Assembly: GCF_039654945.1 (NCBI RefSeq)
Contig: NW_027361819.1
Span: 1,364,001 to 1,428,000 of the forward strand
From: Dendrobates tinctorius
Taxonomy: Eukaryota
DNA: 64,000 bases
Direction: 5' to 3'
Position 1 is the stretch's first letter, and the number at the start of each line of letters is the position of its first letter. The translations under genes and the position numbers were made by a program. Below, one piece after another: positions 23,020 through 59,130 of this stretch. The notes under the pieces are model-generated. The model did not search any database. It had not been told where the DNA came from and saw only the letters and a program-made list of their open reading frames with translations.

Positions 23020-26000
23020 GAAGTCCTGGTGCAAAGAAACAGGGAAGAATGAGGGACTCTGCCCCCTGGTGGAGGTGTGCAGGGCAGGCACAATCTGACG
23101 GGAGTAGTAGTGAGGTGATCGTCCTCGTGTAGACGGCTGCTCCACCTGGAAAGCTGACTTATTAATACAATGGCGAGGCCAAACATGAGAATAAGTGTTC
23201 TGGTCCCGCTGCAAGATACGGTTTATATTTCCTAAATATTATATTTGATTTCTTGGGAATAAAGTTCTTTAGAATCCGATCACCACGGATACGGAACCAA
23301 TGCCGGCATAATATCTTCCTAGCGGAGGCTCGGCCTTCACTACAGGAGGTGATGAGACAAAATTGAAATTCAGCCATATTCTCAGTAGTTTTAGCATTTT
23401 TTCCTCATCTAATCTCCTGTCCTTTTCTTTTTACTACATTCCTTCTGGGACGTCCGTCTGGAGGCGTCTGTAAGGATATCTTCAGGGCAGCCATTAGTCA
23501 GAAACCTCTCTTTGTAGGAGACGTGACGTATATTAGGCCACATCTAAGGTGCCATTCCTTCTGATCCCCCAATACTGGCAGTGTGGGACATGTTTTATCC
23601 ACTCCAGGAGACAACACCTCCAAATTCCAGAAAGCTGCTAATATCCACATTTCTAAGTAATATGTATGATGCAATCTTGTCTGTAGGATCTTGTGAGATT
23701 GTGACATCTAGAAATGAGAGAGAATAGTTCGGATTAAACACCAGACCTCGCGGGGTCAGTGTCAATCACGGAACACAACATCCAGCTTCATGAACAGTAA
23801 CTGAGCAAATGAGAAATAAATCATCAATAAAAGGTTTATAAAAACAGATGCGAACGATGAAGAGGGACTCAAAATGCCCCAGTAACAAGTTTACATAACC
23901 GGGCGTGAAACGAGACCCCATCGCACAACCCCTCGTCTGCCGGTAGATCACATCCCCAAACAGGACTGCCACTAGGAATTTTGGGGCCCCATACTGGCAA
24001 AATTTTCAGGGCCCCATTGAGACTCCACCCCTCAAACTGTCCACAGTCCCACTGCTCTCTCTTGGAAAAACTCCACTTCTCACCTATCACACATTAACAG
24101 TTCCCATCACCAGATCACACATGTAGTCGGCAGCTTTTGCTTTGGACAAAAGATTTTTTTAAGCCGCCAACATAACAGGGTAGACTCTTTTGGCCGGGCT
24201 CTACTCTACTGTAACCTATTAAATATTTGTTAAAATATGCAATACACTGTAGGTATATTTTTATTTATTTTTCAATTTTTAAAATGACCAATAATATCAC
24301 ATACAAGGAACAAATACCGCTACACCATGACCAGACCACATATTACCACCACATAGTGACCTATAATACCACATACAAGGAACAAATATCACCACACCAT
24401 GACAAGACCACATATTACTACCATAGTGACCGAATAATATCATATACAAGGAACAAATACCACCGCACCATGCCCAGACCACATATTACCACCATAGTGA
24501 CAGAATAATATCATATACAAGGAACAAATATCACCGCACCATGCCCAGACCACATATTACCACCAAAGTGACCAAATAATAGCACACACAAGGGACAAAT
24601 ATCACCGCACCATGGCCAGACCACATATTATCACCACATGGTGACTGAATACTACAATACTGATCATTAATAAAAAAACATAATACTATCATCATAAGTG
24701 CCATTATACACAGGAGATCTTTATTTAGTATGCAGTGTCTGTGTACAGGTAATATAGTGATCAATGACATTATACACAGGAGCTCTGTATATAATGTACA
24801 GGTAACACAGTGATCACTGGTGACATTATACACAGGACCTCTGTATATATAGTATACAATGTATAGTGTCAGTGAACAGGTAACACACTAACTCACCAGA
24901 GACGTCTCTAGGTGAAGTCCTTCATCCTTGCTTTTCATCTTTCATCCAGCACAGACCGCCATCACATCTTTCAGCCAGGACTTGTCTCTGCAGGAAATAA
25001 CACAGTTATCTAGAGCTCCGCTTGCAGAAAACATTACTTATTTTTTCCCAACTTCTGCATTACACCACATGAAGAAAAAAAGGCGACATAGTGTCGATCT
25101 GCACAGTAACAGGACCGCCTCCCATTTAAAACAGTATCCTCAAAAAATTAAATACATCACTGCAGTAATAATATCCCTTAATTAGCCCCTATGGTAATAA
25201 TATCCCCCATCCTGACCCCCGTGTGTCTCATTCCTGGCTTTAGCCATATGTTCTCCCATCGCGCCCTCATGAGTATCCATTCTGCCCCCATATGATCTCC
25301 ATCGTATCTATCCTGGCCCATGATCCTGTGTGATCTGTGTCCAATCATGCCCCGTATCTCCATTCTGCCCCAGTCCAGCATTCTGCCCCATGTTCACCAT
25401 TCTGCCCCATGTTCAGCATTCTACCCCAGTCTCCAGCATTCTGCCCCATGTCCACCATTCTGCCTGCAGTCCAGCATTCTGCCCCAGTCTCCAGCATTCT
25501 GCCCCATGTCCAGCATTCTGCCCCAGTCTCCAGCATTCTGCCTCTGTCTCCAGCATTCTGCCCCCATGTCCAGCATTCTGCCCCCAGTCCAGCATTCTGC
25601 CCCATATCCAGCATTCTGCCCCATGTCCAGCATTCTGCCCCAGTCTCCAGCATTCTGCCTCTGTCTCCAGCATTCTGCCCCCATGTGCAGCATTCTGCCC
25701 CATGTCCAGCATTCTGCCCCAATCCAGCATTCTGCCCCATGTTCACCATTCTGCCCCAGTCCAGCATTCTGCCCCATGTTCACCATTCTGCCCCAGTCCA
25801 GCATTCTGCCCCATGTTCACCATTCTGCCCCATGTTCACCATTCTGCCCCATTCTCTAGCATTCTGCCCCATATCCAGCATTCTGCCCCATGTCCAGCAT
25901 TCTGCCCCAGTCTCCAGCATTCTGCCCCATGTCCAGCATTCTGCCCCAGTCCAGCATTCTGCCCCCATGTCCAGCATTCTGCCCCAGTCTCCAGCATTCT

Positions 26001-32189: not shown

Positions 32190-34480
32190 GTGAGGTGGTC
32201 GTCCTCGTGTAGACGGCTGCTGCACCTGTGAAAGCCGACTCATTAAAACAATGGCGAGGCCAAAAATGAGAAAAGAAATGCTTGTGTCTCGTTGCCCAAA
32301 GGGTTTTCTATTTCTTAAATATCATAGTTGATTTCTTGGGAATTAAGTTCTTTAGAATCGGAACCCCACGGACAATGAACCAATGCCGGCATAATATCTT
32401 CCTAGCGGAGGCTCGGCCTTCACTACAGGAGGTGATGACACAAAATTGAATTTCAGCCATATTCTCAGTAGTTTTAGCATTTTTCCTCATCTAATCTCCT
32501 GTCCTTTTCTCTTTACTACATTCCTTCTGGGACGTCCGTCTGGTCTTCCTCTAGGCGTCTGTAAGGATATCTTCAGGGCAGCCATTAGTCAGAAGCCTCT
32601 CTTTGTAGGCGACGTGCCTGTGTATTAGGCCACATGCACACATGGAGTGTTTGGTGAGTTTTTTACCCCAGTATTTGTAAGCCAAAACCAGGAGTGGAAC
32701 GGTCACATGAAAAGGGTAAGGCTGTGTTCACACAGAGGTTTTTTTCGCGTTTTTCCCTCGGATTTACCAAAAAATCCGCTCAAAAAATACTTAAAAGAAG
32801 CTTCCCATTCATTTTAATGCATTTTGCACTTTTTGTGCATATTGATGCGTTTTTTTACCACGAAGAATACGCTTTGCGGTAAAAAACGCAGTATGCTCAT
32901 TAATTTTGCAGTAAATTCCACATTTCTGGCTATTTTCTATGTGTCTGGGGACGCGCGGCAAAAAAGCGTGGAAAAAAATCGCACGTTTTCTAGGAAGGAG
33001 TCCGGTTTTTATGCTGAAATTTTCTGCATACGTGTGCACATAGCCTAATAGAAACATTTGCACCACTTCTGCATTTCTCACCGACTCCTTGTTTTGGCTA
33101 CAAATACTGTGGTAAAAAAGTCACCAAATACTCACTGTGTGCATGTGAGCTTAAAGTTCACGTCTAAGGTGCCATTCTTTCTGATCCCCCGATACTGGCA
33201 GTGTGGGAAATGTTTTATCCACTCCGGGAGACAATCATGACCAAATTATACAGAGCTGATAATATCCACATTTCTAAGTAATATGTATGATACAGTCTTG
33301 TCTGTAGGATTTTGTGAGATTGTGAGATCTAGAAATTGGACAGAAGAATAGGTCGGATTAAACACCAGATCTCACGGGGTCAATGTCAATCACCGAACAT
33401 AACATTCAGCTTCATGAACAGTAACTGAGCAAATGAGAAAAAAATCACTAATAAAAAGTTTATAAAAACAGATGCAAGCGATGAAGAGGGACTCAAAATG
33501 CCCCAGTAACAAGTTTACATAAACGGGCGTGAAACGAGACCCCATCGCACAACCCCTCGTCTGCCGGTAGGTCACATCCCCAAAGGAAAAATCATTGTGG
33601 CTCTAAATAAATCTGAGGCTATGTGCACACGATGCAGATTTGCTGCTGATCCGCATTGTGATTTACAGTACAATGTAAATCAATGGGAAAAGAAAAAGAT
33701 GTGTGGAATTGCTGCGGATTTAAAAAAAGTGCATGTCACTTCTTTTGTGCGGATCTGCAGCGTTTCTGGCCCCCTCCATGATAGAAATCCGTAGTGGCAA
33801 AAACTGCAGAAAATCCGCATAAAAACCGCGGCTGCGGATTCTGCCAGGAGATGTGGATTTTGTGCAGAAAATTCTGCACCACTTTTCCTACGTGTGCACA
33901 TAGCCTAATACCCTGGATCAAAACCCCAATCTGATCCCGGGAAAGTTCTGTTATTGTACAAATATATTTCTATGGCTTCTGCACCCAAATTAGGCTGAAT
34001 ATTAGAGTCTAAAGATATTACATCTAAAGTGAAAATTACACAGTGAGATGGTTCAGATGTGACCGAATTCATCTATAAGATGGGAAGAATCCCGTGAAAG
34101 CGATGGTGATTGTGAAAGAAAGGACGGAAGAAATAAATCAGTGTAGTGGGATAAATTCCAAGTGATTGACCCGATCCCTGAAATGATGGGACGTCTGGGG
34201 ATTATTAATATCTGTATGCAGGTTTGGCAAATAATAACAATGAGGTATTTGTATAGTTCTTTATTAATAACAAATCTCTGTCTCTTATGTAGAATTTCCG
34301 CCCGCTCTGCTGATAAAATCACATTCCGATACTGGATAAATGGCAATCAGAGGAAATAGTCTGATAATGTCTTATCCCCGATATTCGCTGGGATTCAGAG
34401 GTGTTTGCAGTGAGATCCCAGATAGCGGCTCCTCCACCTTCATCAGCGGCCCTTATAATTGTATCCCCAGTGCTCCTTAA
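32190..34480 (-). pseudogene. Decayed Penelope-like RT relic (copy 4)
   Basis: Paralog of 13460-15780. Confidence 0.8.
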
Positions 34481-39209: not shown

Positions 39210-39677
39210 NNNNNNNNNNNNNNNNNNNNNNNNNNNNNNNNNNNNNNNNNNNNNNNNNNNNNNNNNNNNNNNNNNNNNNNNNNNNNNNNNNNNNNNNNNN
39301 NNNNNNNNNNNNNNNNNNNNNNNNNNNNNNNNNNNNNNNNNNNNNNNNNNNNNNNNNNNNNNNNNNNNNNNNNNNNNNNNNNNNNNNNNNNNNNNNNNNN
39401 NNNNNNNNNNNNNNNNNNNNNNNNNNNNNNNNNNNNNNNNNNNNNNNNNNNNNNNNNNNNNNNNNNNNNNNNNNNNNNNNNNNNNNNNNNNNNNNNNNNN
39501 NNNNNNNNNNNNNNNNNNNNNNNNNNNNNNNNNNNNNNNNNNNNNNNNNNNNNNNNNNNNNNNNNNNNNNNNNNNNNNNNNNNNNNNNNNNNNNNNNNNN
39601 NNNNNNNNNNNNNNNNNNNNNNNNNNNNNNNNNNNNNNNNNNNNNNNNNNNNNNNNNNNNNNNNNNNNNNNNNNNNN
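39210..39677. other. Assembly gap (468 N)
   Basis: Run of n. Confidence 1.
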
Positions 39678-39840: not shown

Positions 39841-39944
39841 AAGTAAAGAAAAACAAATCATAGTGTAGGGCGCAGTGTGTGCAGGCGGCGAAAGACACAA
39901 TAAGAAAACATTATTTTGAAAAAAAAATTTAACATTTATTTAAC

Positions 39945-42874
39945 TTATTTTTTAGTTGCTGGAAACTGGGGGGTGTGGAGGGATGAGGAACGGCTTTGGG
40001 TGGAGTAAGGGGTTCTAGGGGAAGGAGGAACCAAAGAAGTGGGGGAAGGGAGCCGAGGCAAGGAAAGTTGTGAAGTGGGAGGTGATGGAGGAGGGAGGGT
40101 AAGAGTCCTCCTCTTAGTTTTTTTAGGACGGTGGCCCGTCGTCTTCCTGCTGTCCTCGCTTGAGCCTGAGGACTGGCTAGACCCCGGGGACCGCCTTGAG
40201 CCTCTGGACCGCCTTGAGCCTCTGGACCGCCTTGAGCCTCTGGAACGCCTGGAGGCTGTGGACTGGCTGGAGCTGGGGGACCGCCTGGCGCTTGTGGACC
40301 GCCTGCCAGGATCTTGTTCCAGCTGTGGCATGCTGGTGGTGGTGGATGTCCTGGCAGGGGCCGTAAATATTGAATGCGGGTCCCCCAGCTGATGCTGCTC
40401 CGAGGTGGTGGTGGTGGTGGTGGTGGTGGCGGGCCATGCAGGCGTGGTGGCTGTGGCGGTCCATACCGGGGTGGTCCTCCCGCTGGTGGTGGTGGTGGCG
40501 GCGCTACAGGCAGGGGTGGTGACGACGGGCCATCCAGTGGTGGTGGCGGCAGCAGTGGTGGGCCAGGCAGGAGCAGCGCTTGGCATTGTGTTGGCGGGTA
40601 AGTGTCCAGCTGCACTCGGACTTGGGGCAGTATATTGGTGTCCGGCGAGGCTTGGAAGTGTGGTGGCTGTGCAGTGATATGCAGCAGAAGTAGGTAATGC
40701 TGTAAAACGAGTCAGTGGTGGCACCGGTGGAAATGCCACCACTGACTGCTGCATAATCCTACTCTGCTGCATAGCCTGCATAAAAGCATTGTTGCAGGCC
40801 TGCATGACAGTCAACTGGAGGTCAGGGGTAAGGTGTTCCGCCGTGTCCCGAGCTATTTGGGTGTAAAAATGATGCGCTGGTCTGGCGAGGTCGACTTCCA
40901 GGCGCTCAAGGCGACCCTCGATAGACTTGTAGCGTTGGTCCAAAAGGAGGAAACCACTCTCAAGTCTATCGGAGAGTGCCTTGAGGCTACTCTGAAAGAC
41001 CGAGCTCAGTTCAACGAACTCGGGCATGAGAGGCCTGTCCAAGGTCCTCTGCCGCTGCTGGCGGGAAGTGCCCGCAAAACCAGTGGCAGAGACCTGGGAC
41101 AGGGGAACACCTGAGCGACCAGCTTCCTGGTCTCCAGATGACTGTGGTGCAGACCTGCAAGGTGCTTCCTCGCTGATGGATGGCTGGGAGGGGTCCGGGA
41201 CAGCTTGATGAAGGACCGCTTCGGGACCAGGTTGCAGGGTGCTGCTCCAGGTGCTGTGAAAAGAAAAGAAAGAAATTACTACCATAAATTAACAATCGCC
41301 AACTCCTGTGGAATAGAAAAGCACAGAATAAAACACAATACAACTAGAAAATACTTACGTTCGGGAGGCAAGGACCGGTCTTAAAAATGCCAAGGCACGA
41401 TGGTATCGGTACTTCGTGCCGGTCCTTGCCGCAGCACCACTGCGAACCTTATTCTCCTGACGGATATCCCTGTTGAAGCGGTCCTTCATCGAGCGCCAAC
41501 GGGTTCTGACTTTGTTCACTGTGATGGAAAAAAAAAAAAAAAAAAAGTAAGACTACGCACTGGAGGCTGTGATCATCCAACTGTGTGTGATGATAGAAAC
41601 TCCATGGAGTTAATAGCATCACACACAGTTGGGTGATCCCGGCCAAGATCACTGCTGCATCACACTGCATTTAAATACTTACGAAAATCCTTGCGGACCC
41701 GGGGAGAGGCGTTGTCCCAGCCATCCATCAGCGATGCGGCCACCTCGTTCCAGAGCCGCCGGATCACCACGTTGTCCGAGTGCAGTTGGTGACGGGTGTC
41801 CCACAACGGGACTCGCTCCTGGACTAGACGGATGAGCTCGTCGTTGTCCAGGGCGAGGTCCTCCTCCCGCTGTGGAGCCTAGAAAAGAAAGACAAACATT
41901 AATCTTTGAAAGATTTTAAAATAAAAAATATCTAAAACTAGCTGAAGAGCCCGGCGCTGCCCGGGCATAGTAACTACTGTGGTTAGTTATAGAAATTTAA
42001 AATTATCCTCCATCCCATAATCCCGTGCCCATATTCCATCATACATATCCTCCATCCCATAGTCCTGTGCCCATATACCCATCATACATATTCGCCATCC
42101 CATAGTCCCGTGCCCATATACCCATCATACATATTCGCCATCTCATATGCCTGTGCCCATATACCCATCATACATATTCGCCATCCCATAGTCCCGTGCC
42201 CATATACCCATCATACATATCCTCCATCCCATAGTCCTGTGCCCATATACCCATCATACATATCCTCCATCCCATAGTCCCGTGCCCATATACCCATCAT
42301 ACATATCCTCCATCCCATAGTCCTGTGCCCATATACCCATCATACATATTCGCCATCTCATATGCCTGTGCCCATATACCCATCATACATATTCGCCATC
42401 CCATAGTCCCGTGCCCATATACCATCATACATATCCTCTATCCCATGCCCATATACCCATCATATATATCCTCCATCCCATAGTCCCGTGCCCATATACC
42501 CAAACAAACAAACATGAAAATAAATGCAAAAAAAGAAACAAACATCGAAAAAAACAACCATGAAAATTTAAAAAAAAAACAAAAAAAACAAAAAAAAAAT
42601 AAATAAATAAATAAAGCAAACTAGAAAATAATTAAAAAAAAAAAAAAAAAAACAGTCCGTCTGTACTTACATCACGTCTACCCGCCCGCACTTGGCCTTG
42701 CTGCTCCTGCCGTTCCTCCGGTGGTGGTGGCGTGATGGAGGATGAGGTCTGAAAATTAAACAGAAAAAATTAATCACATGTGTTTATTTTTTCAAATCCA
42801 TACGGAAGCATAGTACTCACTTCTTCTGCCTCTTGCCCTGTCCCGGGGACATATTCTTCACCAGATGAAGACAT
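39945..42874 (-). CDS. Harbinger ORF2 MADF/Myb-SANT-like DNA-binding protein, 5 coding exons (42874-42821, 42748-42671, 41878-41683, 41518-41359, 41253-39945), ~598 aa
   Basis: All junctions are polyY-AG / GTRAGT with consistent phases 0,0,1,2; spliced product has LIRLVQERVPLWD..W.EVA..KVRTRWRSMKDRF..YRYHRALAFLRP. Confidence 0.88.
41938..42500 (-). mobile_element. Helitron-like 3' end plus ~40-bp minisatellite inside the MADF intron
   Basis: Minus strand ends GCCCGG-GCAGCG-CCGGGC hairpin, 7 nt, CTAG|T; tandem CCCATAGTCCCGTGCCCATATACCCATCATACATAT units at 42004-42500; 5' TC end not found. Confidence 0.6.
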
Positions 42875-43405
42875 GCTGCAATAAAAAAAAAAAGAGACAT
42901 AAGTACATAGAAATGTATTGAAATTTCAGCCAGACATTAGGTTTTTCATACTTACATTGGTGCAGCTTGTGCTGTGTGTCCACTAGTGAGCAATCCTTAA
43001 AGTATTGTGGAATCCCAGTGCCCACACCATTTTATCACCTTGGTTTTTTTTTTTTTTTTTACTGTCTAGACCAAATTTCAGTCATGTTTATTTAAAAAAC
43101 GCATGCGCATAAAAACGCAAGCGTGCGCAAGACCATGCGCAAGTATTGCGCTCCCATAGGCTCCAATGTGGTGTTTTTGCGCATTCCGTGCGCATGCGTT
43201 GTTTTAACGAGACAGGGCGGAACCAAAAATGCAACATGTTGCGTCTGACGCGCCTGGCGCGAAAGACAAAAAAACGCATGCGCACGAAAGCGCAAATATG
43301 CGCAAAACCATGCGCACATCATGTAAAATATAGGTGCGCAGTGCGCATGCGCACTGGTGCGCCCGATGCGCTGCGCACAAAAGCGCTAATGTGAAACCAG
43401 CCTTA

Positions 43406-44260
43406 GTCCTACACAAGGATGAATGGTTAAAACACAATTCAAAGACCCCCCCTTGCTATGTTACAGACAACCTCCCAATCTAAGAAACATCATTATCTGA
43501 AGGTCAATGCCCTCTGATTCACCAAGAGGAACATATCCTTGCAATGGGAGAAGATGCAAAACCTGCATTCATATAGAGACCAAAGACAAAATCCAAATTC
43601 CCAACACACAGCAGGACTATAAGATCCCAGGGACATTCACATGTTCCTCTTCCAATGTGGTGTATTTAATTCTATGCAATATATGTCCTGTGGGTGGCCT
43701 CTATGTTGGAGAAACAGGACAGAGACTGAGAGCAAGGATGAGGTCTCATCGTCATACAATTACAGACAAAAAACCATTTACCTGTGGCCAAACATTTCTG
43801 TCATCCAGGTCACAACATAGACAATATGAAAGTTGTCATTTTAAAAGGCAATTTCAAATCACAGACACATTGGAGAGTGTGGGAACACAAATTCATTACA
43901 ATCTTTCATTCTATTCACACAGGACTCAATTTGTCAGAAGGTTTTATGACCCATTACCATATCTGAGCTATGTCCTCCAAGTAGCCCTTTGATCTCACAG
44001 AACTTATCACACTACCTATCTAATCTTACCTAATTAAGGATTCTCTCTCCAAGCTCATTGTTTGCTTATTGAAATGTTGTGCTTTAAACTGTATATAAAT
44101 AAGGTTTCTTCAAATATCTTGTCATATCAGCCTGATGAAGGGACGTAAGCAGTCCCGAAAGCTTGCTTTGTAACAACATTCACTATTATTTGTTAGCCAC
44201 TAAAAGGTATCATACGCACAAGATTCCTATTTTGTATCTCTCACTGAGAGCACTTATATA

Positions 44261-44292
<32 letters not shown>

Positions 44293-44337
44293 CTACTGGC
44301 TAACACAGTACCAAACCCTTTTTTCGTTTTGCTTTAG
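43406..44337 (+). mobile_element. 3' fragment of Penelope-like element (GIY-YIG endonuclease, frameshifted) plus pLTR
   Basis: RQPPNLR, CNGRRCKTC, NVVYLILC..LYVGETGQRLRARMRSH, then VAKHF..EHKFI..GLN in another frame. Confidence 0.88.
44129..44167 (+). ncRNA. Minimal type-I hammerhead ribozyme-like motif in PLE pLTR
   Basis: AGC-CTGATGA-A-GGGAC-GTAAGCA-GTCCC-GAAA-GCTT-GCT: core boxes, 5-bp stem II, palindromic AGCT stem III, 3-bp stem I. Confidence 0.75.
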
Positions 44338-45090
44338 TCCTCGCACATTTCTTTTTTTTTTTTCAGGTTTATGAACCAATCCAGTAAAATCCACGTTCAG
44401 AAAGCGGAATGGTCCCATCTGATTCCCACAGCGTGCGCAAACCACAACTATCAATATGTACAGCATTACTGCAAAGGGGAGAACCCACCTAAAAGGCTTC
44501 TCCAGGTCTAATCATTGATCAGCTATTCACTGCATACTTCATCGATATGAGATCGATGGTTGGTGTGCTGGGTGTCAGACCCACAGTCAGCTGAACACTG
44601 CTGCACCAAAACAACGTCCGGGCAGAACACAGCAGCACCGTCCATTGCTTAGTGCGCACAGGGGAATATTGCGCTTTGTCCATTGAAGTGAATGTACTGC
44701 GGGACTCGGCGTCGGCCGCTAAACATTACAGAGGACGGCTGTCTGTAGCCCGTACATCACTTAGTTTGGGGCACAGTCATAGCAGTTCTCAGCTCATCGT
44801 GGGACTGTCGGACCGCCATCAATCATATTTTGAGATGAGTCATTGAGCTTTATGTTCCAGACAACTCAACAATCTAAGAGGTGTGGGTCTCCAGAAGCAC
44901 AAGCTGGGCACAGTGTATACAGCACAAAAATGGCATATTTGCAAATTTTCACTCTGCAACATCCACTGTGTACTGATTTCTGGAAACCGCCAGTGGGGTC
45001 AAAATAGTCACTACACCCCTAGATGATTTCCCTGAGTGTAATTTGCTCATTCAGGCCACTTTTGGGAGGTTTTGTAGTATTGGTAGCTTA

Positions 45091-45473
45091 GGCCACTTTC
45101 ACACTTCAGGCTTTCGGTATCAGGCATGGTGCGGCGAAAAACCGGACTGCCGGATCCGGCGCCTGTTACGACCAGATCCGGCTTTTTCCCAGTGCTGTTT
45201 CGTTGGTGCCGCATGGCAATGCGGCGCGTCCATTTTTTTCTGGATCCGGAGAAAATAGCCGGTCCGGCGTCTGGAAAAAACGTTGCATGCAACGTTTTTT
45301 CCCAACGCCGGACCGGTTTTTCGCACTGCGCATACCCGGAAACCTTCTCTGCCAGGAATATATTATATCCGGCAGAAAGAAGGATCCAGTGTCTGCGTTT
45401 GTGGCCGGATCCGGTAGTCTGGTGGTTCGCCGCACCATGCCGGATACTGAAAGCTTGAAGTGTGAAAGCAGCC
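45091..45473. mobile_element. Harbinger-type MITE with long TIRs
   Basis: TTA TSD on both sides; GGCCACTTTCACACTTCAGGCTTTC.. / ..GAAAGCTTGAAGTGTGAAAGCAGCC. Confidence 0.85.
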
Positions 45474-46539
45474 TTAGGAGGCTCTGCAAATGGTGCCCAG
45501 ATCTTACACCAGTGTTGGAAGTCAACATGGACATTGCATGTATTATCAGAGCATTGAACTAACACCTAATGTCTACATCACATGAGCTGTGAAGGGGATT
45601 GTGAAAGCTGTGAGGCAGGAAGGCCATTGTGTGCTGTGGTATATGGTCCTCTGTCCTGGTAATGGAATAGAGACAGCACCTACATGTGAGATGGACATCT
45701 TGTCTGTCCTCTTGAAAATCACATAACCCCTGTGGTGTTTGGATCACAAACCATTGTTCTTGATGGACATCATGACTTCAGCTTAAATGGAATTTGAACC
45801 TGTCCTCAGGCCTTTTTTACACAATGACCTTCTGGTTATATACAAGGACGCCATCTGCAGGAAGTTGAAGACCACTGCAATCACCTTTGACCCTTTAGCC
45901 ATTCTGGACCTAAGAGTGTCACCTTCCGGAGAGAGTGGACATCAGCAGCCATCTGCATGTTTCTGGAGAACTCAAAAGACTGACCTGATGGTACCTTTAT
46001 GTGGAGATGTTATGCTATGTGCCCACTTTGTAAAAATGCTGCGGAATTGTCCGCAGCATATCCGCAACTCCCTGCTGTGGGTAAAACGCATGCAGAATTC
46101 GCATGCGTTATGCATGCATTTTTAGCTTGCATAATGCAAGCGCTTTTCCAAGCGATTTGAAGGACTGCTTGGAAAAGTGATTGACCTGATTGACCGGTTG
46201 GTCACACACAAGCATCGTGCTTGACAAGTGTGACTAACCTTTTACTATTGATGCTGCCTATGCTGCATCAATAGTAAAAGAGAGATTGTTAAAAATAATT
46301 TAAAAAAAATAAAAACTATGGTTATTCTCACCTTCTGACAGCCCCCGATGTCCTTAGCGGCACTCCCAGTACGTTCCGTTCCCAGGCGTGCTTTGCGCGA
46401 ATGACCTTTGTAACATCACGGTCACGCAACCGCGACGTCATCTCAGGTGATTCGCGCAATGCATCCCTGGGAACAGAACGCACTGGGAGTGCCGCTAAGG
46501 ACATCGGGGGCCGTCAGAAGATGAGAATAACCATATATT

Positions 46540-46751
46540 GGCTGCACGACCAGCTCTACCCTCGCCTACTGTATTCTCACCCATGCCTTGTAGACTGTGA
46601 GCCCTCGCGGGCAGGGTCCTCTCTCCTCCTGGACCAGTCGTGACTTGTATTGTGTAAGATTACTGTACTTGTATGTATTATGCACACCCCTCCTCACATG
46701 GAAAGCGCCATGGAATAAATGGCGCGATATCAATAAATAATAATAATAATA
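46540..46751 (+). mobile_element. L2-like LINE 3' end nested in a larger MITE-like element (~46013-47125)
   Basis: TTGTAGACTGTGAGCCCTCGCGGGCAGGG..AAAGCGCCATGGAATAAATGGCGC..(TAA)n tail. Confidence 0.7.
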
Positions 46752-47181
46752 TATTTTTTTAATTCTATTTTTACAGGAATATGGTACCCAGGGCATGGAG
46801 GACAGTCTCCTCTACTCCAGACCCTGGGTACCATCCGCACATGAAGTGCTCACTTTACGCATGGTGGGCATAGCCACATGTGTAAAGTGAGCATTTCAAT
46901 TCAATCCTATGGTGGCAGATTCGCCATGATTCTGCAGAATTAATGAACATGCTGGGAATTTTACCGCTATGCGATTCCGCAGCTGTAAAATCCGCAGCAT
47001 TAGCACAGCAACTGCGAAATCCCATAGGATTGCATGGGGATGCGTTTTGTTAGCATTTTTTAAGCATTTACGCAGCGGCAAAAACAAGGCGGAAATGCAT
47101 AAAAAAAGCAAGGTGGGCACACAGCCTTAAGGGGATGGGCAATGTATGGGCTATGTCTGACCATGTGGATGATATAGGTAG

Positions 47182-48497
47182 TGGGTCGCCCCCGTTCCCA
47201 GGGCTGTGGGGTACTCGGTACCGGGCCGGTGTCAGGGGGATGTGCTGCGGTGGCGGTGACCCGGTCCGTGGCCCTTGGCACCCAATGCAATGGTGGTTTT
47301 AGGTTATAGTTTATATGGATAGTTCGTGACGCCACCTGTGGTGTTTGGCAAGTGTGATGTTAAGCCAACGCTGCGGCAGATCCACTGGAACTGATGGTGT
47401 GTGCAGCCTAGATGGTAAAGCTCCCCACAGGCGGAGCTGTAGTCCCAGGGCAGTGTAGAGGCGGTTATGGAGGAGAGGCGCAGGTGGTGTAGATACAGGT
47501 GCTCAGGTGTAGCGGTGCTGGAATAACTAGAGGGCACCAGAGTATGCGGTTCCAAAGCTTTACTCACTGTTGCAGTTCACACAAATGCCTGCCTCCGCAC
47601 TGTGTTCTCCAGGTCAGGGCTCCCTTCCACACTCCGCCAACATGTATCTTTCTGAATGACTCCTCCAATGCGCCTTTAGGTGCGAAGCACTCCAGTACTT
47701 AGTTACCCTGGAATGCCTCTCTCTAGGTGTTCCTAGTCTCTACTTGTATGACAGACAGCTGTAGCCTCTTTCAGGGACTCCTCACTCCGGAGTCCTGGCT
47801 CACTATCCAAGTGCTGTTGTGTCCCATGTCTATGATGGGAGTAAGGCGTTAGCGGCTCACTACTCCACCGGTGTCTGTTGCTGGATATTAAGGATCCGAT
47901 CATCCTCGGGGAACGGGCCCCGGCCTTGCGCTTTGGACTGGAAGGGTTATCTATTTCTCTAACCCACTTCCCACCGTCCTTGTTTTCGCCTTCGTTCCAA
48001 TCTATTCTGTCTTTCTTAAGGAAAATGCAGTTTCAGGTCTACGTCTCTTCTCCTTCCTTTCCTTTCCGTGCCAGCTGGTCCAGATCACTGAGGCAGCTGC
48101 AGCACTCCTTCTTCCATCCCTTCTCTCAAGGATCCTCACTCCTCACCGAGTGACTTTCCTTCCTACTCCGCCTGCCCTCTTCTGCAGACTGACCTTCGAT
48201 TGATCCCAGACTAATCTGAGACTATTCTGCTCTCAATCCTACACTCTCCCCTTCTTTATACTAACTCCACCCGCCTCCCAGCACATCTCGTGTTACAAAG
48301 CAGGGTTCCACGAAAGGTGCTCCTTCTACACCCTGAGCCTAAAGCTGCAATGTGGCCCTGCTGAACTATCCTGTGTGTGGGATGCAAGTGTTGGAGTGTG
48401 GTCAGGGTTTCCCACCTTACCTGGATGGTGGGGTACCACACCTGGAGAGGAGCAGGTGCAATACCTCTGTGGTGACTGAAGCCTCAGGGGCGCCACA
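47182..48497. mobile_element. Solo LTR (Gypsy/ERV-type)
   Basis: TG..CA termini, imperfect terminal IR TGGGTCGCCCC / GGGGCGCCACA, 4-bp TSD GTAG (47178-47181, 48498-48501), no internal domain. Confidence 0.75.
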
Positions 48498-51400
48498 GTA
48501 GCACACCAAGCTATTTAGGCATCTTCCTCCTTTCTATCTTGCTCCATCCTCTCCTATTACCTTTTCTCTTGCATTGTACTCTCATCTCTTATTATTACTA
48601 GAAATAGGCCTGATGCTATCACATCGGGATTGCGGTGAGATTATCATCTCTGTAGGCATAGTGGTAATGACAGGAGCAGCGGGCAAAGCAGTGCCTCAGT
48701 GGTATGAACTACATACATACGAGTAGAATACGGTATTTTTGTGTCTCAGTTAGTAGACAAAATTGATACACAGTACGGGACTGTGGAGAAATTTGTGCTG
48801 TGTGAGCTAATCAAGAATCGTAAGTAAGCATGCGCGGGTACACCGCACAGTTATGGCTGCACAAGTAAAACGTAGACGTCGCAGATATTCCCCATGGAGG
48901 CGCAGTAACAGCTGCGTTTGTTAACGCGCATGCGCGGGAATAGCAGTGACGTGAATGTCACTTGCCCAGGCACAGTTCGTGAGTGATAGTTTCCACAATG
49001 CCATTTGTTATTTTTTCTGTTTTGGCACATTGGTGGCACTGAAATCTCAACATGGCATCCACAATCTGTTCCAGCCAAACATGAGCTCTGAAAGTCACAG
49101 ATCGACTTCAGGAGAAATTGCTGCCCAATATTTCATCACTTTCTCTCTCATTACAGGGGGAGACTGAGGATAAAGAGACGTTTCAGTCTCCTAAGTGTGG
49201 GCAACACTCCGGGCAATGACAATCGAGTTCTGCTTTAACTTAAAGTTGTCCACTACTTGGAGAACTCCCTGTCGTCCCCCATGGTTGGCCCTGATAAAAT
49301 AAAGCTTACACACCCTTCACATGCTGGCGCTGTTCCCACGGTGTCGGCACTCGCTTTTCCTGAAGCACCCATGCGGTTTTTGTGACACGTGACCCAGGCA
49401 CCTAATCAGCGCTGCCATCACTGTCCCCGTCTCCTGTCGAATTGAACATGAAGAGGAACTCAGAGATCAACTGCAGCCCGGACTTTCTCTTCATGTTCGA
49501 TTTGTCCAAAGGTGGGGACGCTGACGCCAGCTCCGATTGGGCGCCGAGCTAACTTGTCACAACAACCACACGAGAGTCCCAGGACCGTGAGTGCCGACAC
49601 CGCTCGAACTGCTCCGGCATGGGAGGTGAGTATAGGCTTTTTTATTTTATTGGGGCCAAAATATTTAGTTCAGGAAAGGGTTGTCCTTGTAGTGTCCCCT
49701 TAAAGCTGAGCTCCCAGTGGCAATCATGTGGGCACAGCTCCTGTGCCCCCGCACAATTGCCATGACGTATCCATACGTCTAAAGTGGGGAACCCCTATCT
49801 GACTCTAACGTATGGGTACATCAAAGGGCGTGAAGAGGATAACTGTCCAAACTCCTGTGCATCTAAAGACGCTGCTGAACTGTGCAATTTTGGTGCGGTT
49901 TTTTTATGACGAGCCTGAAAAAAAAACATGGAACATACAGGGAAAAACTATAATTGAAAGATTTACACCTGTTCTGTGTTTTGGAGATGCTCCTGGTTTT
50001 GGCACAGAAATACTGATAAAATGCTGATCAAAAATACTAATGTGTGACTGAGGCCTTATATGATCAGGTGGAGTCACTACAACTCCTAATCCTACACCAG
50101 ATCCTCATGGCTGATCAGTAAGGGGATGTGCAGACGATCAGTAACCGGCAGCGCTTTGGGCGCAGCTCAAGTCCGCTGACGGCTATAGAACGCACGTGAA
50201 TCCCCATGTGATCACTGAACCGTGCGGAATCACTGCATCCAATACATTGTACGGATGAAATTTATCTTGCGGAGGCTCGCGTCTCCGCAAGATAAATAGA
50301 TATGCTGCAGTCTGGAAAGACACACCGCATGTCCGTCTCCGCAGGGATGCCACAGGTGTCGGTGCACGCTTAAGCCCCCTTCTCACATAGCGAGATCGCT
50401 GAAGCATCATCGATATTGTGACACAACAGTGATCTCGGTACATGTGACACATAGCGGCAACCGCCCCCCGCTGGATATCGCTGATCTTGCAGGAATGTCC
50501 TGGGCCATTTTTTCGTTGTCGGCGCCCTGCTGGCCAGCATGCATTGCTGTGTTTGACCTGACGAGCGACCTCGTTAGTGATGCAGAACTCAGGGACGCAG
50601 GCTGGAATCATTCAGAATCGCTGCTGTGTGACAAGGTCCCAACCACCGCCGAGGATCGCTGGATGGTTGCTGCGTCGCTGAAGAGATCTGCCTGTTTGGC
50701 AGCTTACTAGCGATCATTTAGTGACACACTAGCGATCCCTTCCAGGTCGCATCGTTGTCGGGATCGCTGGTGCATCGCTAAGTGAAACGGGACCCTTAGG
50801 GTATGTGCACACGTTGCAGCGGATTTGGCCCTTCGGATCCGCAGCAGTTTTCCAAGGGATGTACAGCACCATGTTATCCTATGGAAAACAAAAACCGCCG
50901 TGCACATGCTGCAGAAAAATCCGTGCGGAAGCACAGTGTTTTATTTTCCGCAGCATGTCAATTCTTTGTGCGGATTCCGCAGCGTTTTTACACCTATTCC
51001 ACTATAGGAAGCCGCAGGTGTAAAAACACAGGTGAAATCCGCACTAAATCTGATAAAAATCTGCAGGTATCACGCAGGCATTTTGACCTGCGGATTCTGC
51101 AGATTCCGTGTGGAAATATTCGCAGACGAATCTGCAATGTGTGCACATTCCCTTAGTGGACATTGGATTTCTTGAAATGTCATCTATAATGCTTTAACAT
51201 CTGGATGCTGCGCAAGTACACAGTGTCCAACCCGCGGAGTTTATTGACCCTGTGCACCTACTCCAAGGGTACGTGCACACGTTGCGGATTCTGCAGCAGA
51301 TTCTCCTGCGTTGCACAATACCATTCTATGCTATGTAAAATAAAAAACGCTGTGCACATGCTGCGGAATAATCTGCAGAAACGCTGTGGGTTCATTTCCG

Positions 51401-51943
51401 CAGCATGTCAATTCTTTGTGCGGATTCCGCAGTGTTTTACACCTGCTCCATTATAGGAATCCGCAAGTGTCAAAACGCAGGTGAAATCCGCACAAAAACT
51501 GCAGAAAATCCACAGTAAATCTGTACTAAATCCGCAGGTGAAAGCAGGTCATTTTACCAGCGGATTTAGTAAAATCTGCGCGGAAAAATCTGCAGGGTAA
51601 TCCGCAACATGTGCACCTACCCTAAAGGTGTGTTTCCATATTCAGGATACGCAGTGGAAAGCCCTTTGTGCCCAAAGCGCTGCCCCCTTTTTTATGGGCG
51701 GTGATAACTCATGTGCTCATTGAACACATGCGGAATCACTGCATCCTATCCATAAACTGGGCTATTGCGGAGATGGAGCGTCTCCGCAAGATAAATAGAT
51801 ATGCTGCGGTCTATAAAGACATGCCGCTTGTCTGGTTTCATGAGTGTGTCACCCGCGACTTTGTAAGCATAGTGGAGACAGGATTTCATAAAATCCCCAC
51901 CACTATGCTTTTTAATGGCTAACTGAAAAGATGGTAACACATT

Positions 51944-51981
51944 GCAAGCTTTCGAGACTACTCAGGTCTCTTCATCAGGCT
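51944..51981 (-). ncRNA. Minimal type-I hammerhead ribozyme-like motif in PLE pLTR
   Basis: Minus strand AGC-CTGATGA-A-GAGAC-CTGAGTA-GTCTC-GAAA-GCTT-GC. Confidence 0.75.
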
Positions 51982-52213
51982 AGACTAATACAAAATCTGA
52001 AGAGTCACATTTATGCACAATACAGCACAGAAAAAATGCAATAGATAAGACAAGTCACGTGAAGCAGAACTATCATTATGGGAGAGGGAGAAACATAAAT
52101 ATAAACATTGGACCAGTTCATAGATAAGGAGTCCGGATGTTTTATGGTCCTCTGATTGGGGTCTCCTAATTAATGTGTTGTGATGCCCCCACACGGTCTT
52201 AGGAGCAAATTCC

Positions 52214-53863
52214 TTAATTGATGTAAAAAGACATAAATCCATGCGACACGTTCATTCCAGCATTGAGAGTGTCAAAGGTCGTCATAAATTTATACTCACA
52301 GACTCTTCTCTCTCTCTGAGATGAGAAGTTACCTTTCAGTACCAGTAATTTCATATCCATGTTGCTGTGATGAGGCGTACAAAAATGTTTTGCCACAGGT
52401 AGATCCATTCTTTTTTCTCTTATTGTGTGACGATGAGCATTCATCCTTGTTCTAAGCTTTTGCCCTGTCTCCCCCACATACAGACCCCCAGTTGGACATT
52501 TAGTACAAATAATTAAGTATACCACATTAGATGTAATGCAGCTGAAAGTACCTGGGATCTTGTAGTCCTGATGTGAATTGGGGATCTTTATCTTGTCCGT
52601 GGGCATTATAGATGGACAGGTTTTACATTTTTTCTGGTTGCAAGGAAAGGTTCCTCCAGCTGTTGGATAGGACAGGGAGCTTCTGACAATGATGCTTCTT
52701 AGATTTGGGGGCTGCCTAAAACACAGCAGTGGGGAGTCTGGAAAAATGGATTGTAATTGGGCATCTTTTTGTAGTAAAGGTTGTAATTTCCGTGCAGCGC
52801 CCCTTAGCACCTCCAGATTTGGGTTGTAGGTGACTACTAGAGGCACTCGGTTATTTTCTTCTTTAGCTTTGTAATGTAGCAGGTGATTCCTTGACATTCT
52901 GGTGGCTCTTGTAATTTGGTTTTCAATTGTTCTTGGATGGTAACCCTGATTCAAAAAGGTCTTTTTGAGGTGACCAAGGTGTTTGTCTCTATCCATGGGG
53001 TTGGAACATATACGATTGTATCTGATGGCTTGGCTATAGATAATAGAGTTCTTTATGTGTTTTGGATGGAAACTGTCCCATTTAAGGTATGTTGGACGGT
53101 CAATTGGCTTCTGATACAGGGATGTCTCTATTTCATTGTTTTTTAGCTTAATGATGGTGTCCAAAAAGTTAATCTCAGTGCTGGAGTATTTGAGTGTTAA
53201 ATTGATGGTGGGATGAAATTGATTAAACTGTTCGTGGAACGTCTTTAGCTGTTGCTCAGACTCCGTTCAGATGATTAAAATATCATCAATGAAGCGGTAG
53301 TAGGCCAGGGGCCTGATGGGGCATGAGGACAAAAAGTCGCTTTCAAGCTTGGCCATGAAAAGATTTGCATACTGTGGAGTCATTTTACTTCCCATAGCTG
53401 TGCCAGTCTCCTGTAGATAGATTTTGTTGTCAAATTCAAAGTAATTGTGGGTGAGGATGAATTTTATAAGTTTCACCACAGCATCAGCATCAGTCCCTGT
53501 GTTTTCCATAAAGAATTTGCAGGCATTTAATCCATCTTGGTGGGGGATATTAGAGTACAAAGATTCCACATCAATGGTGGCCAGGATGGTTCCTTCTGGT
53601 AGAGGACCTATTGCTGCTAGTTTATTCAATAGGTCTGTTGTGTCCTGAATGTAGCTAGGTGTATCCTTCACCAGTGGTTTTAGAATACCCTCTACCCATC
53701 CAGATACCTGCTCAGTGACGGTGCCCACACATGAAATAATTGGTCTTCCTGGATTTCCAGTTTTGTGGATTTTGGGAAGCATGTAGAATGTCCCTATTCT
53801 TGGACTCTCTGGTATCAGGTCATCACTGACTCTTATGGACTGGTCAGGCAGACAAGATACCAA
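52214..53863 (-). pseudogene. PLE RT + GIY-YIG ORF, 5'-truncated, one in-frame TGA at 53267-53269
   Basis: ORFs 53267-53863 and 52214-53164 share a frame; LPKIHK, PGRPIIS, DVESLYSNI, GTAMGS, RFIDDILII*T (expected W), VVYLIIC..LYVGETG. Confidence 0.93.
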
Positions 53864-54299
53864 CTTGTTTAGTTCCTTGTAATACTACTGTGTAGGATCC
53901 AACTCCAATTTTCTATACCTGAGTAGTCCCGAAAGCTTGCAATGTGTTACCATCTTTTCAGTTAGCCATTAAAAGGTATCAACTACTGAGGACTCTCAAT
54001 TCTGAATATTATTCTATCTACTGGCTAACAGGTACAAAGATATACATCTTTCCTCCACCACTATGCTGTAATATCTGGACGCTGCGGATTGAAGAGTGCG
54101 GCTGTACGTTCAATCCGCAGCAAATCCTGACACAACACGATATGTGGAAACATACTAGAGCTTTCTTCCTAAATGTGGATCAGCATTCAGCAGTGAGCAC
54201 AACCGAGGAGCTGTAGGGGTTAATTATCCTGCACAGACTCTCCGCTTTCCTACTGGGAGGAAACTTTTCCACTTTCAGTTCCTGCTCTTTCCCACTACA

Positions 54300-55865
54300 A
54301 TGGCGTCTGCGGAGCTGAGGGACGAGCTGAACTGCTCCATCTGCCTGAGCCTCTATACAGATCCCGTATCCCTGAGATGTGGACACAACTTCTGCCGCTC
54401 GTGTATTGTGAGTGTGCTGGATGCCCAGGAGGCGGCTGGAGGGTATTCCTGTCCTGACTGCAGAGCAGAATATCCGGAGCGTCCGGCCCTGGAGAAGAAC
54501 CGGAAGCTGAGGAGCATAGTGGAGCGTTTCTCATCTACTCAGTCTGGTATGGAGGAGACCAGGATCTTCTGTACTTACTGTACAAAGTCTCCTGTACCGG
54601 CTGTGAAATCCTGTCTGCAGTGTGAGACCTCTCTATGTGACGACCACCTGACAGCTCACAACAAGACAATGGATCATATATTAATAGATCCCACAAGATC
54701 TTTTTTCAACAAAAAATGTTCCCATCACAAGAAGATTCTGGAGTATTACTGCTCGCAGGACGCGGCTTGTCTGTGTGTGTCTTGCTGTTTGATTGGAGAA
54801 CACCGAGGACACCAGGTGGAACTTCTAGATGAGGCTTCTGAGAAGAAGAAGAAGAAACTGAGGAAATATCTGGATGAACTAAACCCACAAAAAGCAGAAC
54901 TTCAGACAAGAGCCCAGAATCTGCAGGATCGTAAGAGGAAGATCCAGGAGAAAGCCTCCGATAAGAGGAAGAACATCAGTAAGATATTTATGGACATTAA
55001 GAAGCAAGTGGAAATGGCAGAAAAGAAAGCGCTGAGCGAGGTCTCCAGGCAGGAGGAGAAGATTGTGTCCCAGATATCTGATCTGATCAAGAAGCTGGAA
55101 ATACAGGAGGATGAGCTGTCCAGGAAGATGCGTCACGTGGAGGAGATGTGTCGTGTCACCGACCCAATAAGACTCTTACAAGAAAGTGACATTACAGTAT
55201 GTAGTCATGGAGGTGATGAGGACACAGGAGGAGATGGTGGAGAGGTCAGTTCTGAGGAGGATCTGGATGAGGTTCTCATCTCACTGACATTACACCGATC
55301 TATGAGGGATATTGTCACCAATGTAACATCAGAGCTCGGGTTCCATGTCCCAGACATATTGCTGGATGTTGATACTGCTCATAGAAGGGTGAAGATATCA
55401 GAAGATCTGAAAACGGCAACAAGTTCAGAAGAAAAACAGATGAGACCAGAATCACCAGGAAGATTTGTGAATTACTCCCAAGTCTTAAGCAGATGTGGCC
55501 TCTCCTCAGGACGACATTACTGGGAGGTAGAGTGGAACCAGATAGGAGTCTGTGAATTGGGAATGTCCTATCCCAATATAGAAAGGGAAGAAGAGTCTGC
55601 TATTGGATCTAATGATAAATCTTGGTGTCTGGGTATGTATAATGGAGGATATAAAGTATGGCACAACTTCAATGCATTAACCCTCAGTGTAAAACAAACA
55701 TGTCCAACACTTGGAGTCTTCTTAGACTATGAGGCCGGGCTTCTGTCCTTCTATGAGCTGTGTGACCCCATCAGACACTTACACACCTTCACCGCCTCCT
55801 TCACTGAACCCCTACATGTCGTCTTCTATGTGAATGATGGGGCCTCTGTTACAATAAGAAGCTGA
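54300..55865 (+). CDS. TRIM E3 ligase RING-B1-B2-CC-PRY/SPRY, copy 3, 521 aa
   Basis: Intact ORF with all domain motifs. Confidence 0.96.
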   Translation: MASAELRDELNCSICLSLYTDPVSLRCGHNFCRSCIVSVLDAQEAAGGYSCPDCRAEYPERPALEKNRKLRSIVERFSSTQSGMEETRIFCTYCTKSPVPAVKSCLQCETSLCDDHLTAHNKTMDHILIDPTRSFFNKKCSHHKKILEYYCSQDAACLCVSCCLIGEHRGHQVELLDEASEKKKKKLRKYLDELNPQKAELQTRAQNLQDRKRKIQEKASDKRKNISKIFMDIKKQVEMAEKKALSEVSRQEEKIVSQISDLIKKLEIQEDELSRKMRHVEEMCRVTDPIRLLQESDITVCSHGGDEDTGGDGGEVSSEEDLDEVLISLTLHRSMRDIVTNVTSELGFHVPDILLDVDTAHRRVKISEDLKTATSSEEKQMRPESPGRFVNYSQVLSRCGLSSGRHYWEVEWNQIGVCELGMSYPNIEREEESAIGSNDKSWCLGMYNGGYKVWHNFNALTLSVKQTCPTLGVFLDYEAGLLSFYELCDPIRHLHTFTASFTEPLHVVFYVNDGASVTIRS

Positions 55866-57659: not shown

Positions 57660-59130
57660 TAGTGAGGTGATCGTCCTCGTGTAGACGGCTGCTGCACCTG
57701 TGAAAGCCGACTCATTAAAACAATGGCGAGGCAAAAAATAAGAAAAGAAATGCTTGTGTCTCGTTGCCCGAAGGGTTTTATATTTCTTAAATATCATAGT
57801 TGATTTCTTGGGAATTATATTCTTTAGAATCAGATCGCCACGGACAATGAACCAATGCCGGCATAATATCTTCCTAGCGGAGGCTCGGCCTTCACTATGG
57901 GAGGTGATGAGATAAAATAGAAATTCGGCCATATTTTCAGTAGTTTTAGCATTTTTCCTTATCTAATCTCCTGTCCTTTTCTCTTTACTACATTCCTTCT
58001 GGGACGTCCGTCTGGTCTTCCTCTAGGCGTCTGTAAGGATATCTTCAGGGCAGCCATTAGTCAGAAACCTCTCTTTGTAGGAGACGTGCCTGTGTATTAG
58101 GCCACATCTAAGGTGCCATTCTTTCTGATCCCCCGATACTGGCAGTGTAGGACATGTTTTATCCACTCCGGGAGACAACACCACCAAATTCTAGAAAGCT
58201 GATAATATCCACATTTCTAAGTAATATGTATGATACAATCTTGTCTGTAGGATCTTGTGTGATTGTGAGATCCAGAAATTGGACAGAAGAATAGGCCGTA
58301 TTAAACACCAGACCTCACGGGGTCAATGTCAATCACTGAACACAACATTCAGCTTCATGAACAGTAACTGAGCAAATGAGAAATAAATCATCAATAAAAG
58401 GTTTATAAAAACAGATGCGAGCAATGAACAGGGACTCAAAATGCCCCAGTAACAAGTTTACATTACCGGGCGTGAAACGAGACCCCATCGCACAACCCCT
58501 CGTCTGCCGGTAGGTCACATCCCCAAAGGAAAAATCATTGTGGTTCTAAATAAATCTAATACCCTGGATCACAACCCCAATCTGATCCCAGGAAAGTTCT
58601 GTTATTGTACAAATATATTTCTATGGCTTCTACACCCAAATTAGGCTGAATATTAGAGTCTAAAGAAATTACATCTAAAGTGAAAATTACACCGTGAGAT
58701 GGTTCAGATGTGACCGAATTCATCTATAAGATGGGAAGAATCCTGTGAAAGCGATGGTGATTGTGAAAGAAAGGACGGAAGAAATAAATCAATGTAGTGG
58801 GATAAATTACAAGTGATTGACCCGATCCCCGAAATGATGGGACGTCTGGGGATTATTAATATCTTTATGCAGGTTTGGCAAATAATAACCATGAGGTATT
58901 TGTATAGTTCTTCATTAATAACAAATCTCTGTCTCTTATGTAGAATTTCCGCCCGCTCTGCTGCTAAAATCACATTCCGATACTGGATAAATGGCAATCA
59001 GAGGAAATAGTCTGATAATGTCTTATCCCCGATATTCGCTGGGATTCAGAGATGTTTGCAGTGAGATCCCAGATAGCGGCTCCTCCACCTTCATCAGCGG
59101 CCCTTATAATTGTATCCCCAGTGCTCCTTA
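57660..59130 (-). pseudogene. Decayed Penelope-like RT relic (copy 5, least interrupted)
   Basis: IIRAADEGGG, RPIISGIGS..HYIDLFL, GCAMGS, KPFIDDLFLI, RKILCRHW. Confidence 0.8.

Follow-up and report, generated by a model that had tools for sequence, protein, structure and literature searches.

Two diverged copies of a Penelope-like element (PLE) in the window, by which we mean the whole 64,000-nt stretch of Dendrobates tinctorius DNA analyzed here, share short sequence blocks downstream of a hammerhead ribozyme, and the locus raises the question of what these blocks do. The first-pass annotation read them as a splice donor and a branch point hidden in a hairpin. We favor, at a probability of roughly 0.7, the reading that the blocks form a stem-loop at the 3′ terminus of the PLE template RNA (stem S1), at which the template is recognized and its copying begins, and which doubles as a 5′ untranslated region (5′ UTR).

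PLE copies and the shared module

The copies in the window are endonuclease-positive PLEs, in which the reverse transcriptase (RT), a telomerase-like one, is followed by a GIY-YIG domain in one open reading frame (ORF) upstream of the module. An RVT_1 match was obtained on 53863-53267 of copy B, homologues carry PF00078, PF01541 (GIY-YIG) and PF26215, and the nearest proteins were those of Dendrobates tinctorius (93%) and Ranitomeya imitator. The features of the three copies and their target-site duplications (TSDs) are given below.

43411-44333, plus strand: copy A, a 5′-truncated PLE insertion with the end of the GIY-YIG coding region, 3′ UTR, hammerhead and terminal stem-loop module
43403-43410 (left) and 44334-44341 (right): probable 8-bp TSD of copy A, TTAGTCCT, the basis for its insertion end
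44132-44164, plus strand: minimal type-I hammerhead of copy A (CUGAUGA, unpaired A, 5-bp stem II, then GAAAGCUU)
between 44164 and 44165, plus strand: predicted hammerhead cleavage in copy A, after GAAAGCUU
44192-44199, plus strand: S1a, the 5′ arm of the stem, GTTAGCCA
44206-44211, plus strand: GGTATC, formerly read as a donor between 44206 and 44207; the copy B insertion ends just before this motif
44297-44304, plus strand: S1b, the 3′ arm of the stem, TGGCTAAC, formerly read as a branch point
44305-44333, plus strand: last 29 nt of the copy A insertion, AC-rich and then T-rich, formerly read as a pyrimidine tract
44334-44341, no strand: right copy of the probable TSD of copy A, flanking host DNA that holds the proposed acceptor AG at 44336-44337
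51909-53863, minus strand: copy B, a 5′-truncated PLE with RT and GIY-YIG ORF pieces at 53863-53267 and 53164-52214
51978-51946 and 51923-51916, minus strand: hammerhead and S1a of copy B; the insertion ends after GTTAGCCATTAAAA, without a tail
53917-54057, plus strand: copy C, an inverted 5′-truncated copy lying against the 5′ end of copy B and starting within hammerhead stem II
53961-53968, 53975-53980 and 54022-54029, plus strand: S1a, GGTATC and S1b of copy C, followed by a full tail with a final CTTTCCT at 54057
51896-51908 (left) and 54058-54070 (right): 13-bp TSD of the composite B+C, CCACCACTATGCT

The ORF remnant of copy A (43426-43957) was 51-62% identical to the EN region of copy B by tblastn with the copy B protein as the query. 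The first-pass annotation had located the shared blocks in two diverged PLE copies (A and C), and this held; copy B is a third copy, on the minus strand, with a complete hammerhead (51946-51978) and a stop directly after GTTAGCCATTAAAA. The block GTTAGCCA.TAAAAGGTATCA was present exactly at 44192-44212 and 53961-53981, with two matches compared to 0 in 100 shuffles, and the block TCTACTGGCTAACA was present exactly at 44292-44305 and 54017-54030. The spacers between the blocks are unrelated, as had been claimed, and measure 97 and 53 nt. The stated complementarity of GTTAGCCA (44192-44199) to TGGCTAAC (44297-44304) was also correct and holds at every position.

A hammerhead motif is present in copies A and B and in relatives; it consists of CUGAUGA, one unpaired A, a stem II of 5 bp, and GAAA with the palindrome AGCU after it. 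The minimal hammerheads of PLEs have been described as having CUGANGA, an unpaired nucleotide, G10.1-C11.1, a long stem II and GAAA, with helix III palindromic and helix I short (PMC4209133). Because the motif fits this published minimal PLE hammerhead, the predicted cleavage site of copy A was placed after GAAAGCUU. Helix I covaried between families, with GCAU/AUGC in the Hyperolius locus L003, GUGC/GCAC in L005 and GUGU/ACAC in L087, the latter two being distant metagenomic families. Of the two originally annotated copies, the one at 53917 starts inside stem II and therefore lacks CUGAUGA. Rfam detected no hammerhead or other relevant family, either across the window at gathering score or within 43000-55000 at E≤10. 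An extra pattern match at 59842 was dismissed as chance. A compensatory pair was also observed in stem II, with GGGAC/GUCCC in copy A (44139-44156) versus GAGAC/GUCUC in copy B (51971-51954, minus strand).

A 521-aa RING/B-box/SPRY (TRIM-like) ORF is found at 54300-55865 on the plus strand. Its depth in X8, the only run that was clearly RNA-like by depth profile, was thousands-fold above that of the adjoining 54097-54237, and thus the ORF or its paralogues are highly expressed. No link between copy C and this ORF was found among the joints listed. Repeats at 8556, 15919, 27515, 34619 and 59270 (plus strand) contain the same sequences with a spacing of ~19 kb, and RT-like pieces at 4848-5000, 14732-14917, 23808-23960, 33432-33617 and 58375-58702 (minus strand) belong to another retroelement, ~40% identical to the PLE RT. 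The ~19-kb recurrence therefore reflects large tandem duplications, each with fragments of the RT-like retroelement, and these duplications are probably a TRIM gene cluster. Long Pro-, Thr- and Ser-rich ORFs of 446 and 228 aa in overlapping frames are present at 39929-41285 (minus strand), adjoining an assembly gap at 39210-39677.

Insertion ends and the next ORF

Insertions end inside or just after the module, which marks where the retrotransposed unit stops on its 3′ side. Only nine ends of insertions or repeats could be read: a TSD defines five of them (in one case only a probable 8-mer), the point at which similarity stops defines three, and identical pLTRs define one. Within the window, copy A ends 29 nt past S1b (probable 8-bp TSD) and copy C ends at CTTTCCT, 28 nt past S1b (13-bp TSD). 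Copy B ends right after GTTAGCCATTAAAA, a placement made because the 13-bp TSD bounds B+C and empty-site joints exist. These joints (51898 to 54058 and similar) were found in run contigs and derive from other copies of the flanking repeat. In a head-to-head pair from Ranitomeya (L002) bounded by a 12-bp TSD, the minus copy ends at CTTTCCTG and the plus copy ends 9 nt before S1b. The Dendrobates copies, L001 and both pLTRs of L086, end at CTTTCCTG as judged only by where family similarity stops. In the Hyperolius locus, two pLTRs were 100% identical over 388 nt, and this identity ended 26 nt past S1b and 5 nt before the ATG. Summed contig depth in a DNA run peaked over the module, fell ~7000-fold at 54097 and displayed a 5′-truncation gradient along the ORF.

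Inverted or partial-tandem 5′-truncated copies were represented by the B+C pair of the window, the head-to-head pair of L002 and a partial tandem in L003. The extension was found at one end only of the inverted pairs: copy C has it and copy B does not, and in L002 the minus copy is full and the plus copy short. Tail length within a pair differed by 82 nt in the window and by 45 nt in L002, compared with 30-40 bp in the literature. A one-ended tail of inverted pairs, TSDs and partial tandems are standard features of PLEs (PMC8557442, PMC3846280).

The DNA surrounding these insertions is itself repetitive. The target of the B+C insertion is a small hairpin-forming repeat (GCATAGTGG...CCACTATGC; window 51860-51908 and 54058-54110), many other copies of which are without a PLE, as indicated by the empty-site joints. 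A second inverted-repeat family (GCAGCATGTCTATTTATCTTG...; window 51770-51830, L001:5130-5200) flanks PLE fragments in the window and in Dendrobates. A GC-rich repeat with many TGCGCAC/GTGCGCA motifs adjoins copy A (window 43250-43402; L086:4760-5027). In one Dendrobates PLE the same repeat breaks up the junction between pLTR and ORF, and gene prediction took an ATG from the repeat there.

One and the same module serves the element as 3′ terminus and as 5′ leader, or 5′ UTR. The distance from S1b to the start codon was 19 nt in L087 (881-aa ORF), 27 nt in L090 and 32 nt in L003 (intact 883-aa ORF). The Hyperolius locus is arranged as a truncated ORF, a pLTR, the intact 883-aa ORF and a second pLTR; given the point at which pLTR identity stops and the positions of the ATG codons, the retrotransposed unit ends just before the next ORF start. 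No intact pLTR-ORF junction was found in L086, in which ~425 bp of unrelated repeat lies in between, and the loci L088 and L089 contributed nothing on this point. The apparently intact Hyperolius PLE (L003:2210-5522; Hyperolius riggenbachi, GCA_040937935.1) is located inside the range of a Kazrin-like gene and looks recently active.

Conservation of S1 and a candidate role in RT initiation

PLE families from the frogs Dendrobates, Ranitomeya, Hyperolius and Xenopus likewise have the blocks. Five frog families were compared: that of window copy A, the C-type family, Hyperolius, X. laevis and L090, which comes from another assembly and is probably from a frog. These families share, letter for letter, GTTAGCCA, N4-6, GGTAT(C/T) and (CTAC)TGGCTAACA(N)GGTAC. 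The proteins of these families, by contrast, reach only 50-60% identity, and no relationship is seen among the spacers. GGTATC is found in four of the five families, and Hyperolius has GGTATT. The strict conservation of GGTATC and GGTAC in frogs exceeds the needs of a plain stem, and this counts against the favored reading.

In the two distant metagenomic families, the arms are GTCAACTT/AAGTTGAC (L005) and GTTGGATT/AATCCAAC (L087), giving an 8-bp stem of different letters at the frog distance from the cleavage site, followed by AC(A/C)GG as in frogs. In the S1 alignment, 6/8 pairs changed on both sides and all cells paired, a result that is partly circular in that the L005 and L087 arms were chosen for their pairing. 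Since these arms were picked by hand, an independent shuffle control matters. An 8-bp stem at that place was obtained in 5% and 2% of dinucleotide shuffles, and the stem together with the shared AC..GG flank motif in 0.04% and 0/5000. Covariation or conservation of the pair across families, which the first-pass annotation had set as its own test, was found in the form of conservation in the five frog families and covariation in L005 and L087. A crude stem search downstream of the hammerheads of 80 metagenomic PLE loci revealed nothing comparable in most of the more distant, GAAACCGG-type clades; S1 is not proposed for PLEs as a whole.

A lone 8-bp stem in one such AT-rich sequence was not above chance (shuffle p 0.1-0.6). 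Statistics on single sequences do not separate S1 from shuffles and were therefore left out as support; the significance of S1 lies in conservation and covariation across families and not in any single sequence. The predicted pairing probability of S1 was at least 0.97 in five frog modules and lower in L005 (0.50), L087 (0.36) and L090 (0.05). In the predicted fold of L090, a perfect 7-bp GGTATCG/CGATACC helix (2933-2939 with 2976-2982) beats S1.

Other pairings and readings of the blocks were also considered. GGUAUC, which follows the 5′ arm, and GGUAC(C), which follows the 3′ arm, could form a helix in pseudoknot order relative to S1 (window 44206-44211 with 44307-44313; 53975-53980 with 54031-54035). 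As a second helix this pairing was rejected, as its linker of 1-3 nt is too short for crossing an 8-bp stem. GGTACC is palindromic, and RNA dimerisation is therefore another possibility. An alternative stem, UGUUACC/GGUAUCA, was perfect in L086u, confined to the C-type family and absent from the other families. A coding role for the module was rejected as well: families differ in the frame of the interval that separates the blocks, and L003 has a stop.

A described system with a similar layout is PAc of Anolis carolinensis (Poseidon_Ac; Frangieh et al. 2024), in which RT starts in vitro at two internal sites, at an AC-rich stem-loop downstream of the hammerhead, and the genomic tail is the stretch between the two start sites (PMC11167929). 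In the PAc consensus (PMC11167929, File S1), cleavage is at nt 30 and CATGGCC (50-56) pairs with GGCCATG (94-100); the tail covers ~85-119 and RT starts in vitro at 111-118 (PMC11167929). PAc and the frog PLEs have the same order of hammerhead, ~20 nt, a stem of 7-8 bp and a loop of 36-97 nt. In both, insertions end in the 3′ part of the loop and ~10-30 nt past the 3′ arm, with a minor end before the 3′ arm (by 9 nt in the frog pair L002). Both also have an optional tail at one end of inverted pairs, and in both no other part of the family is as abundant in the genome as the module. However, the letters of the PAc arms are unlike those of the frog arms, and the main end lies 11-18 nt past the 3′ arm in PAc compared to 26-29 nt in frogs, where one insertion ends right after the 5′ arm. 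In addition, the PAc ORF starts inside the hammerhead, so that its stem-loop is coding, whereas the ORF starts 19-32 nt past the stem in the frog families and L087. Given the predicted folds of the five frog modules and the compensatory changes in two distant families and PAc, the two 8-mers very probably pair, as had originally been proposed.

Under the favored reading, S1 (GUUAGCCA/UGGCUAAC), whose arms and immediate flanks constitute the two conserved blocks, lies 17-27 nt downstream of the hammerhead cleavage site. The RT of the element would recognize the module on a longer-than-unit transcript and begin cDNA synthesis there. The main start would lie 26-29 nt past the 3′ arm. Minor starts would fall within the loop, in its 3′ portion, or immediately past the 5′ arm, and these alternative starts would account for the optional “tail” characteristic of PLE insertions. 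Where copies are in tandem, this stem-loop stands 19-32 nt before the start codon of the next ORF and hence is also the 5′ UTR. The insertion ends, ORF position, conservation and covariation are observations from the families compared, and the recruiting and positioning of RT by S1 is suggested by analogy with Anolis PAc.

The RTs of R2 and of stringent-type LINEs recognize structures in the 3′ UTR of their templates. A conserved terminal structure of the template RNA setting the start of target-primed reverse transcription would be common to these elements and the frog PLEs. Unlike R2 and such LINEs, PLE RT initiates inside a longer-than-unit RNA, at a position lacking homology with the target (PMC11167929) and without dependence on poly(A) or a 3′ end. 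Vertebrate non-LTR retrozymes derive from PLE pLTRs (Li et al. 2026 preprint, doi 10.64898/2026.07.22.740005). Like the frog PLE module, they are hammerhead-bearing, pLTR-derived sequences found in Xenopus and other frogs, and they presumably depend on PLE enzymes and therefore on the cis-signals of the pLTR. Retrozymes are short tandem noncoding repeats, whereas the module of the window is attached to RT/EN-coding copies.

A role in the translation or transcription of the adjacent ORF fits the position of the module equally well. The module could be mainly a 5′ leader of the PLE mRNA, acting in translation start or RNA stability, or a DNA-level part of an internal promoter, and either role might be additional to RT initiation. 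As a leader, the cleaved, uncapped RNA would begin 17-27 nt before S1, with the stem-loop just upstream of the AUG. Consistent with these roles, the ORF of intact elements begins 19-32 nt past S1b, the Penelope pLTR contains an internal promoter (PMC8557442), and self-cleaving ribozymes are reported to be usable by RNA viruses to start translation (PMC13725137). However, a leader or promoter leaves the clustering of insertion ends at the module unaccounted for, covariation favors a helix of RNA (or single strand) over a factor site in duplex DNA, and the homologous stem of PAc is within the ORF and not before it. We consider it unlikely that this is the main function of the module.

A still less probable reading is that the mutual complementarity of the conserved blocks in frogs is incidental. 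The frog families among themselves displayed no covariation, their arms, GGTATC and GGTAC being kept at the sequence level, and the 8-bp stem is not significant in a single sequence. Against this, the letters differ in L005, L087 and PAc while complementarity is kept at the same distance from the cleavage site, and S1 is the prevailing structure of the predicted ensemble in five frog modules.

Splicing and the meaning of the module

The first-pass annotation had proposed a small intron, located in the pLTR or 5′ UTR, with AAG/GUAUCA as its 5′ splice site and GCUAAC as its branch point; the GUUAGCCA/UGGCUAAC helix would mask the branch point and thereby separate spliced mRNA from unspliced template. 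Its premise that PLEs keep introns in the pLTR or 5′ region was borne out for Penelope: the pLTR of D. virilis Penelope carries a 75-bp 5′-UTR intron (PMC8557442, PMC4209133), and such introns are known in both this element and Chlamys-3_cRei (Arkhipova et al. 2003; Craig et al. 2021, PMC8557442). The D. virilis intron and the proposed frog intron are both in the pLTR or 5′ UTR near the hammerhead. However, the end of the D. virilis intron is on the hammerhead's 5′ side (PMC4209133), and the proposed frog intron lies downstream of the hammerhead. For the latter, no splice junction, consistent acceptor or conservation of splice signals outside frogs was found in the contigs and families compared.

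The proposed acceptor AG at 44336-44337, after the pyrimidine tract, falls inside the duplicated host target of copy A, TTAGTCCT (probable 8-bp TSD). GGTAT and CTAAC are present letter for letter in five frog families, and CUAAC fits the yUnAy branch consensus, which counts in favor of an intron. However, GCTAAC is part of the S1b arm, for which L087 has CCAAC, no branch match, and L005 has TTGAC, which fits yUnAy loosely. Compared with the U1 consensus, AAG/GUAUCA matches from -3 to +3 and mismatches from +4 to +6, and it is without a +5G. GGTATC is also gone from L005 and L087 while the stem covaries, so that these families keep the stem with no GT donor after S1a. An AG (ACAG) is found between S1b and the ATG in L003; it is the sole one there, lies 10 nt from the branch A and is without a pyrimidine tract, and L087 and L090 have no AG in this interval. 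The region from the branch point to the end of the proposed intron is the insertion terminus in eight of the ends read. The proposed intron-retention switch was thus not upheld, in that insertions end at or within the proposed intron and intact elements are without a usable acceptor.

No joint between 53976 and 53977 was present among the 15 joints listed, out of a set with 155 more, single-contig joints included, in assembled contigs of X8 and two runs of uncertain kind, and several X8 contigs run unspliced through the module. These data are assembled contigs and listed joints only, and a very small probability was therefore kept for rare splicing; as an explanation of the blocks, we consider the masked intron highly improbable. 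U12-type introns have a GUAUCCUUU donor and a UCCUUAAC branch site, with 10-15 nt separating the latter from the 3′ splice site. An intron of this type was rejected: the donor reads GUAUCA(U/A/C) and not GUAUCCUU, the branch site reads UGGCUAAC, and the nearest AG of copy A is 33 nt away, in the flank.

It is equally improbable that the frog RT-initiation stem-loop also carries a tiny 5′-UTR intron, with a donor (G/GUAUC) past the 5′ arm and a branch site in the 3′ arm. This version stays open because GGTATC and CTAACA(C)GGTAC are conserved in frogs beyond the needs of the stem. If it were true, splicing would strip the RT start signal from the mRNA, and the helix or bound RT would block splicing on template RNAs, physically coupling the choice between translation and retrotransposition.

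This analysis sets aside an appealing but unsupported splicing model; the favored reading of S1 is the RT-initiation stem-loop. On this reading, the frog blocks belong within the known framework of the PLE tail and an internal RT-initiation site and are not a new kind of system. The comparison adds evidence for a stem ~20 nt past the hammerhead cleavage site that is common to several PLE lineages, namely the frog families, two metagenomic families and Anolis PAc. For PLE biologists, S1 would be a concrete RNA element to mutate in asking how the third class of retrotransposons picks its template, and it may also help explain the mobilization of hammerhead-bearing nonautonomous retrozymes.
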